The notes under the pieces are model-generated. The model was not told where the DNA came from. It saw nothing but the letters and a program-made list of their open reading frames with translations, and ran no database searches. DNA of 63,641 nt, counting the filler, from Salisapilia sapeloensis CBS 127946 (Eukaryota; Protista; Oomycota): NCBI GenBank assembly GCA_023334545.1. It is 9 parts of 9 records of this genome, joined end to end, with 100 filler letters (N's around TTAATTAATTAA, not from the genome) between each part and the next. Parts side by side here need not be neighbours in the genome. Positions count along the whole stretch, not along the records: positions 41,107 to 50,863 come from JAADVB010000458.1; 8 more parts are not named here. The stretch is one strand, 5' to 3'. Shown here in pieces: positions 41,107 to 50,863 of the stretch; position 1 is the first letter of the stretch, and every line of letters starts with the position of its first letter. A program made the translations under genes and the position numbers.

Positions 41107-41190
41107 AACTAGCGCAAGTAAATCGAATGCACCTTCAACTTGGATGACTGCCGACGATCTACCGCGATACGCTCGACACGATTCCCACGA
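41107..41190 (+). repeat. Decayed dispersed repeat (copy 3, at contig start)
   Basis: gcaagtaaatcgaatgcaccttcaacttggatgactgccgacgatctaccgcgatacgctcgacacg aligns with 9450-9520 (minus strand) and 51240-51300. Confidence 0.7.
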
Positions 41191-43236
41191 AAACATGACA
41201 GAGGAACATACGATACACGTGGATAGGAATGGAAAGGTAAAGAGCGAACTAAGCCTAGGGCGAACCGCCAAATACTTCATTAAATTCTACTACTGTTTTT
41301 GCGTGTTTGTTCACACAATGCCTTAAATGCCTGACATAATACCCGAGATTACGCTCAACAAACATGGCCTCACTTTTCATACGCATTAAACAAAGTGAAT
41401 ACATTATCGGTGGAAGGAGTACTTATGGACATGCAGGCGAACTGTATCAACTCTAAAACGAAGCCATATAAAGCTAAATGCATGCGCAAGACTAGCATTG
41501 AGTTTTTGAAAGAGCCACAAAGTACTGAAGCGAACACTAATCGCACTAAACGAACAATTTCATGCTACAAGAGCTTTATTCCTGAAGGCTCACCGCAAGT
41601 TGGTATTCGTTATGCGAGTAAGAAGCGGCCTCTTTCGACCATCGAAGAGCTCACTGCTGGCAATTCATCTTACTACGAGAATATCGAGAAATGCACGTCA
41701 GATTGCAAGCGATCATTGTATAGCCAACACTGTTTCAGGTATACGCCAGGGACGAATGGATATGCCACTGTATCTGACGGCATTATTTTTCGCGACCTTT
41801 CTGTTATCCCAGTAGATCTAGGAAATCTTACCAAATTGCTAAGCATAGACGATGTTCTGGACAAATAAGGGTGCAAAGGTGAACCTGGGTCAAAAAGAAA
41901 GGATCCTTTGCAAGCCTTAAATGTGTGAGTAGTGATAACCCTTTAAAGCCTTCATGTACTGCAAATTAAAATAGAACATCCCACCATTCGTGACGACTCA
42001 TGCTACAAAAATAGTGCAGACCAACGAGCTAACAATTTGAATAGACGATGATTTTATAGGCAATGCTAGATCATCACTAGAAAGTTTTAGATTTATAACT
42101 TTGCACGGACACGCGCCAGACTCATGCTTCGATCCAATTAATCTCGCTGTAGATGCAGACACGTGCGTTCAGTCCAATAGGAGCCAGCTGACACCATTTT
42201 GTAACTTCTAGATATCCAAATTACGCAATATCCATTCAATCGTTTTTATTTCTAGTTCAAAAGATGCATGGAGTCGGTGTACCCCTTTGCCTATCTGTTG
42301 TAAAATCACGCTATCGATCGCTACCTTCCTCTTTTATCCGAACTACTGTATCTCTTTTAAGAGCTCAAATTAATTTACTATAAACCGAGTCACTCGGTGT
42401 ATGTGGGTGTCCTGATGTGTCCGAGTAATCAGAGCAACTTCACGCTAGCTTCAATCAAGGATTTCTTATCTGAATAAATATTTCCGTATTGGACCTTTGG
42501 CCGAGTGAAAGTGAGAAAGAGAAATAGCTCTTTGGAAGTGGCGTTTAGGTTCAGAGGTCATAAATCATTTCTACTTTTCTGATACGACGATATCCGAGTG
42601 AACTTAAACTCGACTTTTAAAGTCGAATGGCAGAGCTACTGGGGGTGACAACACAGTCACAAGTGAAGCAATATGACGAAAAAACAAAATAACAAACTGT
42701 CTACCAAAGCAAAGTCACCTTCTATAGAACAATAAAAATTGTACCTATCCTACCTACTTGTACGACCCTCAAAGGCCTGCTTCAGTAGATATCTTCTGAA
42801 CAGCATAAGCTATAACTTGACACTTTTCTGTCGCGTATTTCGATCGTATGAAAGCATCGTCATCTTGAAAAGCCATGCTTTCATCTAAGGACCATTGTCC
42901 AGTCTGTATATCCACACTAGTACTCCAGTATGAAATTCATCGCAACTTCTTTTCTTCACATAAGATGACGCGATGGCATAATCTTCTCTTTCCATCCTCC
43001 GACCACGGACGTTGCTGACGCCGCTATGTACGACCAAGTTTCCATCTGCGTGCCTCTAATCAGTCGATGAGTGGCTGAAATGTTTATGCGCGTACGGCGA
43101 TTGGGTGAAAAGATCTCTTTCGATAAGCGAAGACGTACGCCACAGTGCTAATCGACAGGAAGAGCTCAAGTGGCGCGAGAGTAGCTTAGCCACACTCACA
43201 GACGTAGGTGTCAAAGAAAACATTATCTTGATTCCG

Positions 43237-45273
43237 ATGGACTCGTACGCAATAGCTGGGACGCTGCTGTCAATAGCTGCAGCCTGGGTCTTGTACACCC
43301 GTCGTCCGTCTTCATCTCCTGGACAAAAGTCTCAGCTCGAGATGATGCAGATTCAGCAACAAATGCTCATGTACAAAAAGCAGAGTCAAGAGTTGGCTGA
43401 ACGACAGAAAGAAAGCCAAGTTGTGGAAGATGAAAGTAAGTTTGCTGGTGGACGTGTCACCATTTTGTTTGGCTCGCAAACTGGCACAGCAGAAGGGTTC
43501 GCACAAATGCTAAAGAAAGAAGGACGCAAGCACGGGTTCTTTACGCAGATGATCGACTTGGAAGAGTATGATCCGGAGCAACAGCTTTCGGAAGAACATT
43601 GCGTCATCTTCCTCATGGCTACGTATGGCGAAGGCGATCCGACAGACAATGCGATTGAATTCAACAAGTTCATTCGTGGCAAGTCTTGCGACTTGGATGA
43701 AAGCAGTCTTAAGGACGTGCCGTTCACGGTCTTTGGTCTCGGCAACAGGCAGTATGAGCACTATAACACCATGGGCAAACTCGTGAATGACCGCATGGAA
43801 AAGTATGGCGCGAAGCGAGTGTACAAGTATGGCGAAGGTGATGATGACGGCTCTTTGGATGAAGACTTTGACGACTGGAAGGAAGGCTTGTGGAAAGCTT
43901 TGCGCATGGAGTTCCTACCAGACAGTGCTGCTGACATTGAACCGACGGACACAGCGGAAGATGGAACGTCGGAGCCTGTCTTTGAGTTTGAATGTATTGA
44001 AATCGAAGAGGATGAACTAGATCGTCACGCGCGCAAGTCTTCTGAGGCTCATATCAAGTCTCTTACGAAGCATTTTGTTGCATCTCGACTAGCTAAAGTC
44101 GTGGTCAATCGCGAAGTTCGTCAATCGACGGAACTCGGATCCACGGTGCACATGGAAATCGATTTGGAAGGCACTGGCATGAGCTACGTTACTGCCGATA
44201 ACCTTGCGGTGTTGCCTGAAAACCTGACGTCGGTTGTCAACCGCCTTGCCGCGCGTATGAAGTGGAATTTGGACCAGTTGGTCGCTATCACTCCTGTTGA
44301 TGATGAGAACGGTGGCCAAGTGCCCTTCCCATCGCCATGTACGGTCCGTGACATCTTGATGAAGTACTTGGCGATCAATGGAAACCCTCGTAAGGGTCCA
44401 TTGAAGCAACTGGCGTACTATGCGCAGGACAAGGATGAGAGGCAGGAATTGATTCGACTAGCTGGCAAGGATGGCAAGGACGAGTATCAAAAGTGGGTTG
44501 TCGCGGATGAAAGGTCGTTTGTCGACATCATCGAGCACTACGAGTCCATCGACTTGTCGCTCAAAGCTTTGCTGCACATTGTCCCATTCATGATGCCTCG
44601 TTACTACACGATTTCATCTTCTAGCCTCGTGCATCCGAACCGTATCCACGCGACTGTGAGCATCATTCGCAATGAAAAGGAAGATGGACGTGTCTTCCAA
44701 GGTGTCGCATCGACATATCTTGGCAACTTGACGCCAAAATTGGAGGCAGGCGAGGCTCCGGTGGCACGTATTTTCACGCGTGCCTCTTCCTTCCGTCTGC
44801 CGTCGGATCCAAAGACGCCGATCATTATGATTGGACCAGGTACAGGTATTGCGCCCATGCGTGCATTCTTGCAGGAACGTGCGAAACAGAAGGAGGATGG
44901 ACTAGACGTTGGTCGATCCATCCTGTACTTTGGCTGCCGTCGTCGTGACGAAGACTTTATCTATCGAGACGAGTTAGAAAAGTACGAGGCGGATGGTGTC
45001 TTGACGGACATGCATCTCGCGTTTTCGAGAGAGCAACAAGAGAAAGTGTACGTCCAGCATCTGATGAAGCAGAATGCAGCGGACTTGTGGCGTCTAATGG
45101 ATGAGGAGAAGGCGCACATTTACGTTTGTGGTGCGACAACTATGGGAAATGACGTGAACAAGGTTCTGGATGAAGTCTTGCAAGAGTTTGGTGGCAAGTC
45201 CAAGGATGAAGCTGCTGCATATCTGAAGAAACTTCAGAAGGAAGAGAGGTATGTGCAGGAATTGTGGTCGTAA
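43237..45273 (+). CDS. CPR: NADPH-cytochrome P450 reductase
   Basis: N-terminal anchor, FMN motifs (FGSQTGTAE, ATYGEGDPTDNA, FGLGNRQYEHYN), RYYTISSS, GVAS, IGPGTGIAPMR, LYFGCR, KVYVQ, YVCG and terminal QELWS. The likely start is Met45 of the ORF beginning at 43105. Confidence 0.95.
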   Translation: MDSYAIAGTLLSIAAAWVLYTRRPSSSPGQKSQLEMMQIQQQMLMYKKQSQELAERQKESQVVEDESKFAGGRVTILFGSQTGTAEGFAQMLKKEGRKHGFFTQMIDLEEYDPEQQLSEEHCVIFLMATYGEGDPTDNAIEFNKFIRGKSCDLDESSLKDVPFTVFGLGNRQYEHYNTMGKLVNDRMEKYGAKRVYKYGEGDDDGSLDEDFDDWKEGLWKALRMEFLPDSAADIEPTDTAEDGTSEPVFEFECIEIEEDELDRHARKSSEAHIKSLTKHFVASRLAKVVVNREVRQSTELGSTVHMEIDLEGTGMSYVTADNLAVLPENLTSVVNRLAARMKWNLDQLVAITPVDDENGGQVPFPSPCTVRDILMKYLAINGNPRKGPLKQLAYYAQDKDERQELIRLAGKDGKDEYQKWVVADERSFVDIIEHYESIDLSLKALLHIVPFMMPRYYTISSSSLVHPNRIHATVSIIRNEKEDGRVFQGVASTYLGNLTPKLEAGEAPVARIFTRASSFRLPSDPKTPIIMIGPGTGIAPMRAFLQERAKQKEDGLDVGRSILYFGCRRRDEDFIYRDELEKYEADGVLTDMHLAFSREQQEKVYVQHLMKQNAADLWRLMDEEKAHIYVCGATTMGNDVNKVLDEVLQEFGGKSKDEAAAYLKKLQKEERYVQELWS

Positions 45274-45763
45274 GGATGCTTGCATCTAGTTGGATACTAC
45301 GTAGACAGGAGATGGGTAGAGTTTTCATAGGTCAGCGGGGAATATTCGAGCTGAGAATACAAATGCGATTGACCATAGAAATGTAGGCGTTGTTTATTTG
45401 TAGAGATGCATATCGGTAGGTATCCTACTGTCGTCATATTGCTTGGTGGTCGGAAATAATGCAAGAGATACTCTGGATCTCATGTGTGACAAGCATGATC
45501 CGAAAAGCTTGATACTGAACACAAACATCGTAAATGCTCTCTACGCTTCCTGAATAAGCTTTTCTGTGAATAAAATGTATAAGTAGACTAGTTATATCGA
45601 TTGCTATTGGAGGTACGATGGCAGGAAGTTTTGGTTAATGGACGTGCATGCAATAAAACAAACTTTAATCTCATGAACTCTCATTCTTTACTCATGCTTT
45701 ATCTCAAAACAAAGGTAGACATATTCCAATCGGTCAATTGTTCTCTTCGCAATGAAAACCGAC

Positions 45764-46852
45764 TTACGCATCACAGTCCGGATGTTGCGGAGCAGGGGTC
45801 ACTTCGGGAGTCTCAGCGGCCGCTGGAGCCTCCGTAGGCACAGGCTCCGAGGCTTCAGCTGGTACTTCAGCCGGTGCTTCCATCGGAGGCTCGGTAGGCG
45901 CATCCGTCGGGGCATCCGTTGGTGCTTCCGTTGGAGGCTCGGTAGGCGGATCCGTCGGGGCATCAGTAGGCTCCTCCGTTGGTTCCGGAGTATCTTCCGG
46001 AGCATCTTCCGACTGATGCTGTTCAAAGTTGGCGTCATTAGCGATATCTTCGTCCATGTTGCTTGGAACAAGCTTTCCTGGACCGTCATCACTGTCGTTA
46101 GCTGCGTTGCCAGTCACTTCGACCTGGAAGCATGAAGAGTAGGCTGCACCGCCGTAGTGTCCACCAGTCGTCTCGATGTTCTTGTTTACCTTGTCGTTGT
46201 AGAACTTCCAGTACCAGACAAAGTTGTAGATGCCTGGAGCAGTTCCTTCGGGAATGGTCACTTCGCCAACACACGGAAACCCGTTGCCTGCACGACCACT
46301 CCGGACGTTTCCAGAGAAGTCACCGTCCTCGTACGTTTCGCCACAGACGCCATCGTCAAAGTCGTGGAGCTGTCCATCGATGAGCTTATCCTCGGTCAAG
46401 TCAGCAATCTTGTCTAACGTCGTGTCCGGTTTGCCAGTCCAGTAGACACCGTAGTGGGTACCACGCGCCGACTTGTCCTTTGCAACGTGTCCGTTCGGTG
46501 TGTATCCGTAATAGAAGGTTTGACCAGGTGAAACCTCAAGGCGTGTGCGCCAGCCAGAGTAGTCCGGATTCGTGTCCTTACATGCCGGTGGTTCTCCGCT
46601 CTCGGCGTCATCCATCAGCACCTTGTAGGTCATCTTGTTGTTGATTCTCGAATCTCCTCGGCCAGGGTAGTTATTCGCATAGCCAGAGCAAAAGCCATTT
46701 CCACCTGTGCCTCCATAGATGTACGAGTGGCCACCTTCGAATACGACTTCACGGTCTGTGTCGAGACAGTCGATCCATGTATGGCCAGAGATGCCACTAA
46801 GCGTGGCTAGCCCAAGTACAATAGCAGTGGATAGAGACTTGGACGAAAGCAT
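45764..46852 (-). CDS. Secreted protein with predicted mature N-terminal His (HTWIDC), candidate LPMO-like copper protein, with Glu/Pro/Thr-rich stalk
   Basis: Signal peptide ending ISG|H, then NGH, FVWYW and YSSCFQVEV, followed by EPT/DAPT repeats. Confidence 0.75.
   Translation of the reverse strand: MLSSKSLSTAIVLGLATLSGISGHTWIDCLDTDREVVFEGGHSYIYGGTGGNGFCSGYANNYPGRGDSRINNKMTYKVLMDDAESGEPPACKDTNPDYSGWRTRLEVSPGQTFYYGYTPNGHVAKDKSARGTHYGVYWTGKPDTTLDKIADLTEDKLIDGQLHDFDDGVCGETYEDGDFSGNVRSGRAGNGFPCVGEVTIPEGTAPGIYNFVWYWKFYNDKVNKNIETTGGHYGGAAYSSCFQVEVTGNAANDSDDGPGKLVPSNMDEDIANDANFEQHQSEDAPEDTPEPTEEPTDAPTDPPTEPPTEAPTDAPTDAPTEPPMEAPAEVPAEASEPVPTEAPAAAETPEVTPAPQHPDCDA
45790..46010 (-). repeat. Imperfect 12-bp coding repeats (EPT/DAPT/EAPA mucin-like stalk)
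   Basis: Repeated catccgtcggggcatc and ggaggctcggtaggcg blocks. Confidence 0.8.
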
Positions 46853-47595
46853 GTCGAATCGGAAAATGGTTCTTGGAGATGGATGTGAAATAAGAGACTG
46901 GAGCGATCACGGGCCTAGCTCGTCGAGTAGAATCATATGCAGCCAAAGTATTCAAATCAATCTCCGAAATCAGATGCCTTGTCAATCGTTAGGTCAGCAT
47001 TTTCCTGACGTTGCATAGCATTGACACACCATGGAACATCGGAAAGACACACATGGGATGGAGCATACCAATCTTTTTCCTATCAAAGTCCACTTAACAT
47101 ATCTAGGTGACGAGTGAAAATTAGACGAAAGCGCGTCTTTCTTCACAGTTTCTCGTCAAGAGTGACCAACTGATTTCCTAGAGCTGCCCGTTCGTGTCGG
47201 TATTTGTAGTCCGACTAGTTCAGATTCCGTTTGGTTGTGGAGCGAAGTCAGCTGGGCAACAACAAGGTAGAGATTATTCCCAGTGCAAGGGCGGAAAGGA
47301 TTTCCATCTAATGACGAAGGCCTCGAATGAGATTTTCGACAGTTACTGGGTGCCATGTAGAATTGTGCTGCATGAGATCGTAAAAGTCTAGAGTACAGGT
47401 CGATAGCACGTTTCCAGATCAGGTAGGGACGGCAGTCAATGGAACGAAAACACCTGACTATCTCTGCGTCTAATCCGCACCGTAATGGGTCGGATCAGGT
47501 CCAAGATACAGCGCAAGTATATGCATGTGAACGCAAAAGACGGACTTGGAACTTAAAGACGTAAAATGGACTGCAAACATATTTCGTAGCTACGC

Positions 47596-48843
47596 TTAGT
47601 CGCTGCTAGCGATGCTGTGAGGAAAAGAGGCGGACATCGTGTTCGCGGATGCGTCCGTACTCATCTTCGCACGCACTTCATCACCCCTCAGTGCCATCGC
47701 GTCCATGCGCACGGCTTCATGCAGGCACGGAGAGCAGAAGACAATCTTCGGCTTGCTCATTTTATCATCCGGAGTGATCACGTTCATGCGCTTCTTTACT
47801 TGGCAACTGTTGCAGATGAGACGGTAGCAAAGACGGCAGGCCTTTGCCCTCGATCGCATTTTGGACTCACAAACGGCACAAGTGGTCCTGGTAGTATCAA
47901 TGTGGCGAGACTCCTTGCTACGTAGGCGCACGAGCCACGTCAGCTTTCTCATGATTCCACATTCGACATGGCGGGCCGCTGTGTTGGCGATCGCTTTAGC
48001 GTACTCGTTCACTGCGACAGGGCGAAGCATCTTGTTCGGCGTCTCAAGCATGCCTCGAGTAAAAGATTCCAAGGTACCGTCTTTCCTCTGTCGCGCCATG
48101 AAGGTCATTGCGACGTTACTCCACGAAGCTCCCTCCAGGTACGATGTCTCAGGGAAGCTGACGCTATGCAAAAGCATGTAGCCAACCTTCTCGCCGTTCC
48201 GAAGTGTTCGATAGCCCGTGTAGTGCATGTAGAGGAAGTCCATGTCTTTGATGATGTAGTTGAATATACCATCAAATTCGTTCGTTCGGTATGCGATGAC
48301 GTAGGACTCGAACGGTTCTTCTGGTGTCGAATCCTTCAGTACCTCTAGAACACACATTTTCTTACCAGAGTCATCAAGGTATGTGCTCTTCAATCGAAAG
48401 TCTTCAAGCGAAGTTGCCACTGCTCCGTTCATGAAGTCTTCCAACGTGCCATTAATGGTACCAATGGCTCGCATGTCAATTAAACCACCCGTTTCGTCTT
48501 CCAAACCAACCTTGATGTTGGACGGCTTAGTTCGGCGAAGAATGTTACCGAGCAAGACAGTATCTTCACGACGTGCATACACGTGAATGTTTTCAGTCTG
48601 ACGGATGTACTTCCATTTCGACTTATCGTTCAAGTCATCACCAGATTCGCTCAAGTAGTCTTCGTAAGCCTCGAGATGAGATTCGAGCAAACTGTCGGCG
48701 TATTCGTGTAGCTGTTCTTTGTCTTCCTCCGAAAGATTGAGAGGAGGGAACGGATTCGCGAATTGGTTCACAGAACTAGGCATGGTGCACTCGTGTGTGT
48801 AGGATGAGGAAACTGGAGAAGTGAGGATGTTATTGTTGGTCAA
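47596..48843 (-). CDS. Oomycete START-like and degenerate FYVE-like zinc finger protein (likely start Met at 48783)
   Basis: FANPFPPLNLSEEDKEQL, WKYIRQTENIHVY, IGTINGTLEDFM, DFLYMHYTG...GYMLLHSV and C-terminal CAVC...CRLC...ICNSC...FCSPC. Confidence 0.8.
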   Translation of the reverse strand: MTNNNILTSPVSSSYTHECTMPSSVNQFANPFPPLNLSEEDKEQLHEYADSLLESHLEAYEDYLSESGDDLNDKSKWKYIRQTENIHVYARREDTVLLGNILRRTKPSNIKVGLEDETGGLIDMRAIGTINGTLEDFMNGAVATSLEDFRLKSTYLDDSGKKMCVLEVLKDSTPEEPFESYVIAYRTNEFDGIFNYIIKDMDFLYMHYTGYRTLRNGEKVGYMLLHSVSFPETSYLEGASWSNVAMTFMARQRKDGTLESFTRGMLETPNKMLRPVAVNEYAKAIANTAARHVECGIMRKLTWLVRLRSKESRHIDTTRTTCAVCESKMRSRAKACRLCYRLICNSCQVKKRMNVITPDDKMSKPKIVFCSPCLHEAVRMDAMALRGDEVRAKMSTDASANTMSASFPHSIASSD

Positions 48844-50695
48844 AGGGTGTCGTCATTGCGTTCTTTTGCCAATCGGAGACATTACTGGCAAGCATAAATC
48901 CAAAAAAGCACAACGTGAAAACACACGGGAAGTATGAAGAGCACACAAACGTGTGAAAAACACTCAAGAAATGTAAATGCACATAGCGCGCGCGAGTAGT
49001 CTGTAACAGATGTGGCTGGCACGCAAGCCCCGTGGTCAGCTCAGTACCTGGGCATCTAGACCAGATCTACTGACAGCATATCAGGTCGTCGTCGTCCTAG
49101 ATGCACCAGTAGCGCCAGGACCATGTTTATTCGCTAGGCTAAGTTTCCATTGAACTGATCCCAGCGTGATCTGCTTTCTATCTTTATATTAATAACCTAA
49201 CCCTACGCGAGACAGTCCGAGCGGGAAAATCCCGATGAGTACAGAGTCTCATACTAGGATAAATCCGATCGAACACCTAGTTTCCATGGCTTTCAATCAT
49301 AAGACCAAGAGGTTTTGGATCCGACAATTGAACTACGTGCCATGGCATAAATATCTCTTGATGGTTCTGACGGGATCTGGCACCACTGTGACTAGCTGAA
49401 GCGGAAACTTGAGCTACAAGGTGGTAACGATACCTGATACTGAAAGAGTGGACTTTTCTCAGTTAGTGCTCTGCATCGGATCATACTCAAACGATGCATC
49501 AGTGCTGAAAGGTTTTCGAATAAAGTCTATCATGTTATTCGTAGATGTCTGACGTCATTTAAATTTTACAGATAGATAAGGAACTTCTACTGGTACGGCC
49601 ATTTGCACCACATAAAACTTCCGAATGCACAATTGGCGCGATGCTAATCGGGGTGTCTAACATCTACGGAATATTTTATGCAGCAATCTTGAGTACAGTT
49701 GAGATGACGAAGACGCGAACCGCAAAAGTGCAACCGAATGTGATGACTGATTTACTTTAGAGACATGAGGACACTGTACGCATTATCTTGCAACAGTTGT
49801 GTCCGACTTTTGTATTTTCATGCTAGCTTCATATAGCACAGCTTCACTTTTACACTTTTTTGAAATAAACAATGTATAATTCTGTTATTGGAACAATGAT
49901 AGCTTTGGTGATGTGGTTTATCATACTTTGCATCTAGCTTTTAAACTCACCTCCATAAGGTCCAAGCGCTGTAAAACGGGAAGACCGTGTTGTATGTCCG
50001 CTAGAATTCAGCATCAATCCTGACATTACTACATATCAGAGCAGGGCAATCCGCTTGCTGTGTATTCGTGGACCATGCCATTCTCTCTATTTGAGGCGAT
50101 ACACAAAACAAAATATGCAGGATAGCTAGGTTGTCGATTGTCGTGGCTGAACTGCTGGTTCAGATAGAACTGTGCTTCCACGTTATTCGACTGGACAAAG
50201 AGTGATCTCTCAGCTCGCGTACCATCATGCCAAGCTCTTGCTGATTGTGATTAGACTTCGAGTCGCTTGTAATATTTAGGTACACTGTATCATGAGTACT
50301 GCTTATCAGATAAACGTGGATCTAATGTATATTATCGCTTGAGGCTTCTTACTATGGTGAGATTTGTACAGTTCGTCATTGGTACAGTTGTTGAGACTTC
50401 TATCGAAAATATAGCAGATTATAGTTTGTGGAGCATTCTGGCTGGATCGGACTGGTACAACTTTTTTGTTTTGTTTTGTATTTGTAATACTTATTTTTAA
50501 GATAGTACAGTTGGAAGTATCCTACAAAGTTGTACATTTCTCTCGTGTTTCCTAGATGACATGAAGCTGTAGCGAGGCAGCCTTTGGCTTCCATACTAAT
50601 TTTGATTCTTGAATGCTATTATTCATTCGTTCGAATCTACGTAGTTTTCGCAACTTTCAGCTTTACTTTGCACAAGTACCAAAGATGGAAACCTA

Positions 50696-50863
50696 GGCCG
50701 TGTTCACGCTAAATACCGATTCGGTAAAATTAGAGATTCGCACTTTGCAACTCTATTCACGCTAATCGAATCGGGCAATTTCGCGTTCGCTGAGAATAGC
50801 CGATTTTGTTTTATCACTTACCATTGGAAACCCAACCCAACACTTCAATATAACTTTCCCGCC
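50696..50863 (+). mobile_element. Possible left end of a PIF/Harbinger-like element or MITE, truncated by the contig end
   Basis: CTA|GGCCGTGTTCACGCT resembles Harbinger-type TIR starts, and TTCACGCTAA recurs near 50756. The partner TIR is not in the window. Confidence 0.25.

Follow-up and report, generated by a model that had tools for sequence, protein, structure and literature searches.

With each family of lytic polysaccharide monooxygenases (LPMOs) so far, another substrate or another biology has come to light: cellulose, chitin, starch, xylan, pectin and copper uptake. Reportedly, the pectin-active AA17 family consists of secreted oomycete proteins with an N-terminal His, as in the protein described here, while the copper site of X325 proteins is said to use an Asp ligand rather than a Tyr, and AA18, which recent texts credit to Santos et al. 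2025, is said to be a metagenomic bacterial enzyme. AA16 (module X273) occurs in fungi and oomycetes, has the LPMO fold, and often carries C-terminal extensions or glycosylphosphatidylinositol (GPI) anchors (PMC6420742). Voshol et al. (2017, 2019) described a putative, uncharacterised 'LPMO16' group, typified by Aspergillus niger An07g08250, whose members occur in metazoa as well as in fungi and oomycetes, and whose relatives are AA11, AA14 and AA16. In our literature search we found no papers on LPMO families AA19 to AA21, and no paper naming DUF7492. We examined an LPMO-like gene of the oomycete Salisapilia sapeloensis CBS 127946 (assembly GCA_023334545.1) in a stretch of 63,641 nucleotides, hereafter the window. 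The coding sequence (45764-46852, minus strand, 362 aa plus stop) lies on the piece 41107-50863 (JAADVB010000458.1), and was identified from the open reading frame (ORF) list, its translation and a Pfam match to DUF7492.

We found that the S. sapeloensis protein adds a new member to a family that is catalogued but uncharacterised, and that this family is a distinct variant of the LPMO kind. Judging from residue conservation and the structural model, it is very probably a copper histidine-brace protein, and we assign a probability of about 0.6 to the reading that it is a secreted member of the LPMO superfamily acting as an oxidative enzyme on wall polysaccharide. The original prediction, a short note made from the DNA alone, had proposed an LPMO-type histidine-brace protein at this place, and the fold, the cleavage context and the conservation of the site residues described below all support that proposal. 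Every sequence string that it quoted was found in the 362-aa translation, including the internal His, the aromatic strand, the terminal strand and six Cys in the domain (positions 29, 55, 91, 170, 194 and 241).

The sole Pfam match of the protein was DUF7492 (PF24320; 49.9 bits against a gathering cut-off of 27, E 3.3e-13, residues 56-254), and 48 out of 50 wider relatives matched the same family. A word-indexed search of 5.8 billion proteins recovered 52 homologues at E 1e-61 to 1e-108, and every named one came from an oomycete (Pythium, Lagenidium, Globisporangium, Nothophytophthora, Phytophthora, Peronospora and Peronosclerospora); the other matches of this search corresponded to the Pro/Thr-rich tail alone. 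The family is small, since a profile search of 1.84 billion cluster representatives gave only 215 proteins at E <=0.001. The closest relatives of the S. sapeloensis protein were 49-68% identical to it, and it clustered with proteins of Pythium, Lagenidium and Nothophytophthora whose tails also end in a lone Cys.

We aligned 136 near-full-length DUF7492 domains, to which the conservation counts below refer. Their tree separated two clades of 62 and 74 members with 99% local support. The named members of the clade of 62 were fungal (Mortierellomycota, Chytridiomycota, Taphrinomycotina and Pezizomycotina), with many fungal relatives found in Aspergillus, Penicillium, Blastomyces, Paracoccidioides, Fonsecaea and Cladosporium, while the clade of 74 comprised all the oomycete proteins and some unplaced metagenomic ones. 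Profile-profile alignment leaves no doubt that the two are homologous (hhalign probability 100%, E 5.7e-50). They share a signal peptide followed by H-S/T-W, and the motifs G-Y-x-R-x-Y-P-G-R, N-G-H, F-D-D-G-x-C, W-x-W and Y-x-x-C-F-D/E/Q-V. The fungal clade differs in having E-x-Y and in lacking a 22-residue insertion after strand 1; neither clade has been characterised.

The N-terminus has the arrangement expected of an LPMO. As read from the sequence, the signal peptide (residues 1-23, MLSSKSLSTAIVLGLATLSGISG; 46784-46852, on the minus strand like all the features of this gene) starts with MLSSK, continues with a hydrophobic core and ends in SGISG. It is directly followed in the translation by HTWIDC, whose first residue, His24 (46781-46783), is the predicted mature N-terminal residue (His1) and first brace ligand. 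His1 was conserved in 134 out of 136 domains and Trp3 in all 136, and the structural alignments to LPMOs also start at this residue. Among 133 relatives, His1 lay mostly at precursor positions 16-32. The residue before it (position -1) was A in 84, G in 29, S in 10, C in 5 and T in 2 of the 130 members that had His1 and enough upstream sequence, and position -3 of the same full-length precursors was V (63), A (25), S (14), T (12), I (10) or C (6). All 130 obeyed the -3/-1 rule of signal peptidase, with a small -1 residue and a fitting -3 residue, so that cleavage immediately before His, as had been predicted, is the consistent reading.

The other residues of the putative copper site were also nearly invariant. 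The second conserved His of LPMOs, which supplies the third nitrogen ligand of the brace, is represented by His122, in the Asn120-Gly121-His122 motif (46487-46495) within TPNGHV (residues 118-123), and the three positions of the motif were kept in 127, 131 and 133 of the domains, respectively. The predicted beta strand GIYNFVWYWKF (residues 207-217; 46202-46234) carries a W-x-W pair, Trp213 and Trp215, each present in 135 domains, and aligns with 'GKYTLAWTW' of AA11. The last strand, AAYSSCFQVEV (residues 236-246; 46115-46147), aligns with 'EMYMNC' of AA11 and contains Ala236, the predicted axial Tyr238 (Y in 129 domains, F in 5) and Cys241 (129 out of 136). The conservation of His1, the NGH His and the Tyr, on which the original prediction depended, was thus near-complete. 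Two of the fused paralogues described below depart from this pattern: P0368 has lost His1 alone, and P0364 has Gln at position 1 and N-G-N in place of N-G-H, so that both brace histidines are gone while the remaining domain is kept. The joint loss in P0364 is a further hint that the two histidines function together.

The LPMO-fold domain (residues 24-247; 46112-46783) was delimited from an AlphaFold2 model, fold searches and hhalign. The model of residues 24-250, built with 34 sequences, had a mean predicted local distance difference test score (pLDDT) of 84 and a predicted template-modelling score (pTM) of 0.84, and both the aromatic and the terminal segments were modelled as long strands. 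All the 19 Foldseek matches in PDB at E <=0.001 were LPMOs. In a search of 48,161 PDB representatives that was independent of Foldseek, ranks 1-22 were all LPMOs or LPMO-like proteins, with structural Z scores of 10.6 for AA15, 9.4 for AA13, 9.4-8.2 for AA10, 8.8-7.6 for AA9, 8.6 for AA11, 8.4 for fusolin, 8.2 for X325 and 7.8 for AA16; below rank 22 the scores fell to 6.8, with unrelated beta-sandwiches, and AA14 had 6.3. The similar scores place the protein about equally distant from all the characterised LPMO families. In the AlphaFold-DB clusters, oomycete and fungal DUF7492 models ranked at the top (TM score 0.86 to 0.62), with 'Chitin-binding type-4 domain' as the label of some, and a feature search of the ESM Atlas gave DUF7492 as the nearest clusters and LPMOs as the next, with a BIM1-like cluster at rank 63. 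The immunoglobulin/fibronectin-III-like beta-sandwich of LPMOs, for which the original prediction had proposed a check by AlphaFold and Foldseek, was obtained in the model, and the LPMO alignments began at residue 1 of both the model and the matched chain.

Such an arrangement suggests the following mechanism. Signal peptidase would cleave after Gly23 and leave His24 as the N-terminus; one copper would then be held by the amino group and imidazole of His24 together with His122, with Tyr238 of the last strand at the axial side. The reduced copper, with H2O2 or O2, would break glycosidic bonds oxidatively in a cell-wall polysaccharide. The substrate would most likely be beta-glucan of the organism's own wall (beta-1,3/1,6-glucan or cellulose), or that of a host.

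The oomycete clade deviates from the characterised LPMOs in one part of this site. In AA9, AA11 and cellulose-active AA10 the position two residues before the Tyr supplies a second-sphere Gln or Glu, while chitin-active AA10 enzymes draw the corresponding Glu from the L2 region; this second-sphere residue is important in LPMOs for the activation of H2O2. Within DUF7492 the position was Ala in 58, Glu in 55 and Gln in 4 of the domains. Glu or Gln occupied it in all 59 sequences of the fungal-type group defined in this way and Ala in all 58 of the group of the S. sapeloensis protein, while basal members had other small or hydrophobic residues. Of the LPMO motif N/Q/E-x-Y/F, the oomycete clade has the Tyr, aligned with the AA11 Tyr, but Ala at the N/Q/E position, a replacement by which nature itself probes the second coordination sphere. 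The same clade carries the insertion mentioned above (residues 33-54, DREVVFEGGHSYIYGGTGGNGF; 46691-46756), which the profile-profile alignment shows to be missing in the fungal clade: 22 residues immediately after strand 1, modelled as helical, at the position of the LPMO L2 loop. The columns Y15, I22, G24 and G25 were conserved in the oomycete clade only. Given the location of the insertion, a relocated second-sphere residue, perhaps supplied by this segment, is possible. Candidate residues conserved in this clade alone are, in mature numbering, D8, Y15, K54, Y91, K102, D103, Y114, D143, N146 and R164.

Behind the domain, residues 248-362 (45767-46111) form a predicted disordered acidic tail with tandem PT(D/E)AP-type repeats, which corresponds to the acidic stalk ending in QHPDCDA of the original prediction. 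Its 115 residues include 25 P, 19 A, 17 E, 14 D and 12 T, with a net charge of -30, and its DNA contains 12/24/48-nt tandem repeats at 45873-45982. The tails of relatives varied in length and were of three types: no extension, a long linker of low complexity with a hydrophobic end resembling a GPI signal, and a linker with a lone Cys. In the last type, found in many oomycete relatives, the Cys lies 2-20 residues from the end (DCHA, FCV, WCT, YCH and CRRRMRS); in the S. sapeloensis protein the end is DCDA, with the lone Cys360 (45773-45775) three residues from the C-terminus. In the AA9 enzyme CoAA9A, a lone Cys in a disordered tail leads to a disulfide dimer with better cellulose binding and activity (PMC10990093). 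The two proteins share a long disordered tail and a single Cys flanked by charged residues, but CoAA9A belongs to another catalytic family, and the S. sapeloensis tail differs in its strong acidity and in lacking an X283 motif. By analogy, dimerisation through Cys360 is a reasonable proposal: the Pro/Thr-rich tail would act as a flexible spacer, and Cys360 would probably form an intermolecular disulfide, which would either link two copies into a dimer or fasten the protein to another one in the wall.

A concrete candidate substrate comes from a sister subclade of oomycete proteins, in which a Pro/Thr/Ala linker connects DUF7492 to Tos1_N and Tos1_C domains. PMC4176579, citing Steczkiewicz et al. 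2010, describes Tos1 as a protein of the yeast cell wall and a predicted beta-1,3-glucanase of circularly permuted form. The fusion of [Pythium] brassicae is one continuous ORF (L007:9518-11602), and the same architecture was found in at least 10 further protein clusters, including Pythium oligandrum Poli38472_003053 and Albugo laibachii F0VYW5. We examined 11 fusions (P0113 and P0359-P0368), and in 8 of them the signal peptide with HSW-DCID, the NGH, the W-x-W and the AAYSSC were intact. DUF7492 is conserved in oomycete pathogens of crops, of animals (Pythium insidiosum, Lagenidium) and of insects, in obligate biotrophs (Peronospora, Peronosclerospora, Albugo) and in a mycoparasite (P. oligandrum), and is widespread in fungi, including dimorphic human pathogens. 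The fusions, together with this retention, point to a cell-wall beta-glucan as the substrate, most simply that of the organism's own wall, and the spread over such lifestyles is more in keeping with action on the own wall than with the breakdown of plant biomass. If the protein does act on the organism's own wall, this would be a new kind of wall remodelling, in organisms that offer few specific targets for control. A much more specific proposal, in which DUF7492 would be a new LPMO family whose oomycete branch cleaves beta-1,3-glucan or a mixed wall glucan, remodels the own wall together with Tos1-type glucanases and uses a relocated second-sphere residue, we hold as tentative and rather doubtful when taken as a whole. 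We know of no LPMO with an established activity on beta-1,3-glucan.

Several observations weigh against an oxidative, wall-directed enzyme. The Tos1 fusions belong to the sister clade and not to the gene of S. sapeloensis, and no Tos1 was found on the piece 41107-50863. The Ala two residues before Tyr238 is shared with all the 58 aligned clade members, at a position where the fungal clade has Glu or Gln. The gene neighbourhoods yielded no functional partner at the oomycete loci, the fungal loci or the Phytophthora paralogue locus. Every database name of a DUF7492 protein was 'hypothetical' or 'DUF7492', much as the original prediction had guessed.

Of the characterised families, AA11 gave a link by sequence. 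The profile of the wider DUF7492 family matched the AA11 structures 9exj, 4mah and 7p3u (E 7e-9, 3e-8 and 5e-7, respectively), with 'TIP-G--PG-Y-L-W-W' and 'E-Y--C' aligned to 'TIPAGIEPGKYTLAWTW...REMYMNC'; the common pattern is P-x-G-x-x-P-G-x-Y-x-x-x-W-x-W and E-x-Y-x-x-C, and Tyr238 falls on the Tyr of the AA11 E-x-Y motif. On these grounds the protein might be a divergent sequence within a family already described, with AA11 of CAZy and the putative 'LPMO16' of Voshol et al. as the likeliest choices. The AA11 alignment, however, spans only the C-terminal ~80 residues and was obtained with the wider-family profile only, since the oomycete-only profile gave E 1.4. By sequence, the N-terminal two thirds did not align with the AA11 proteins (AoAA11, 4mah/4mai; AfAA11B, 9exj/9hdg; 7p3u); their domains have ~190-200 aa against 224 aa here, their Glu of E-x-Y is replaced by Ala in the oomycete clade, and the structural score for AA11 was not above those for AA15, AA13, AA10 and AA9. 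Full-length similarity to AA11 was not found, DUF7492 is kept separate by Pfam, and the relation is, on the profile alignments, one of remote homology and not of membership. As for 'LPMO16', its taxonomic range and stated relations are compatible with DUF7492, which is widespread in Aspergillus, and the two may plausibly be the same family; A. niger, however, was not among the 120 fungal DUF7492 matches listed. Identities to AA15 (Thermobia domestica, 5msz), AA13 (4opb), AA10 (4oy7) and AA9 were 10-21%, and no significant sequence match to these families was found, except for weak matches to Pfam AA9 in 4 out of 50 family members. AA16 (MtAA16A, 7ze9) shares with DUF7492 the LPMO fold and the occurrence in both fungi and oomycetes, but neither similarity to the X273 module nor the Q-T/N-Y motif by which AA16 is recognised (PMC6420742) was found here. 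X325/Bim1-like domains (LaX325, 6ibh) are of ~150 aa and reportedly use an Asp ligand where DUF7492 conserves a Tyr, and the Pfam scan gave no match to PF20238. The original prediction had set the protein apart from AA17, and this agrees with our searches: no AA17 chain appeared in the PDB sequence searches with the protein and two profiles at E up to 10, or among the 50 matches listed in each fold search, and the AA17 motifs HTGPCE, FYWLALH and WQxYxNC were absent from the protein. By these comparisons the protein is a member of Pfam DUF7492 and not of AA17, AA16, AA11 or X325, and we consider its placement in an existing CAZy family quite improbable.

Two other explanations keep the LPMO-like copper site and dispense with polysaccharide cleavage. 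In the main rival reading, the protein would bind copper for capture, delivery or buffering at the cell surface, like the fungal X325/Bim1 proteins, and this would fit the Ala at the second-sphere position in the whole oomycete clade, the many paralogues with hydrophobic tails resembling GPI anchors, as in X325, and the persistence of the family in animal pathogens and in obligate biotrophs whose complement of wall-degrading enzymes is reduced. An axial Tyr conserved in 129 out of 136 domains, where X325 reportedly has Asp, argues in the opposite direction, as do the lack of a BIM1-like match in Pfam and the conservation of the W-x-W and other aromatics as in the catalytic AA11 and AA10; moreover, intact domains covalently fused to a predicted glucanase are hard to square with a chaperone, and we regard a role limited to copper handling as unlikely. 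Even less probable, in our view, is a copper oxidase, an H2O2-generating helper or a small-molecule oxidoreductase that does not cut polysaccharides, a role for which some AA16 proteins have been put forward. An altered second sphere could favour oxidase chemistry, and AA16 proteins with the LPMO fold are reported to boost AA9 LPMOs rather than to cleave cellulose themselves (PMC10088020). An oxidative enzyme acting on wall polysaccharide remains our preferred reading for the S. sapeloensis protein.

The LPMO-like gene is real and expressed. Its strand, which the original prediction did not give, is the minus strand. Four RNA-labelled runs of this organism contained ~80% of the words of the stretch, and three of these (X2, X3 and X5) were mapped together with the DNA run X1. 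RNA contigs of the three runs spanned 45671-45914 and 45919-46942, free of mismatches and joints; they were interrupted only within the tail repeat, as were the DNA contigs. The flanks at 45374-45669 and 47002-47223 had zero RNA depth in the same three runs and full depth in X1. This coverage between RNA-silent flanks indicates an unspliced mRNA of ~1.27 kb, corresponding to an intron-less transcribed unit at 45671-46942 (minus strand), with a 5' leader of ~90 nt and a 3' trailer of ~93 nt.

We detected three obvious genes on the piece 41107-50863, according to the ORF list and the Pfam scan, and no second DUF7492 copy was found there. Tail-to-tail with the LPMO-like gene lies a gene for a flavoprotein of the NADPH-cytochrome-P450-reductase type (43105-45273, plus strand; Pfam Flavodoxin_1, FAD_binding_1 and NAD_binding_1). 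The same adjacency was found in P. insidiosum (L001) and [P.] brassicae (L007), and not in Nothophytophthora (L003) or Lagenidium (L002). NADPH-cytochrome-P450 reductase is an enzyme of the endoplasmic reticulum that faces the cytosol, and we therefore read the adjacency as probably local synteny only, and not as a redox partnership with the LPMO-like protein. The fungal loci and the Phytophthora paralogue locus had unrelated neighbours.

Copies of DUF7492 lie close together in several genomes. In P. oligandrum the stand-alone and fused genes have consecutive locus tags, in [P.] brassicae a stand-alone copy, the reductase gene and the fusion copy adjoin, and P0004 and P0360 are apparently on one 56-kb contig. 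Two paralogue pairs had equal longest contigs, P0028/P0035 of Phytophthora lilii (59,301 bp for both) and P0044/P0050 of Nothophytophthora (20,236 bp for both), which suggests tandem duplication in Phytophthora-type genomes. Two apparent multi-domain proteins, P0105 (PPR with DUF7492) and P0119 (a long upstream ORF with the fusion), were rejected because the gene models merge neighbouring genes. A Lagenidium gene model, P0101, joins DUF7492 to NHL repeats.

The two ends of the piece (41107-43100 and 48900-50863, ~2 kb each) had a G+C content of 0.39-0.43, compared to ~0.5 in the genes, and neither a convincing ORF nor a convincing repeat was found in them; a 157-aa ORF at 41395-41868 had no Pfam match. 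The third gene is a 415-aa ORF (47596-48843, minus strand) with a FYVE zinc-finger match below threshold (E 0.003) near the C-terminus, and an RNA contig of run X5 at 47239-47500 reaches its 3' side.

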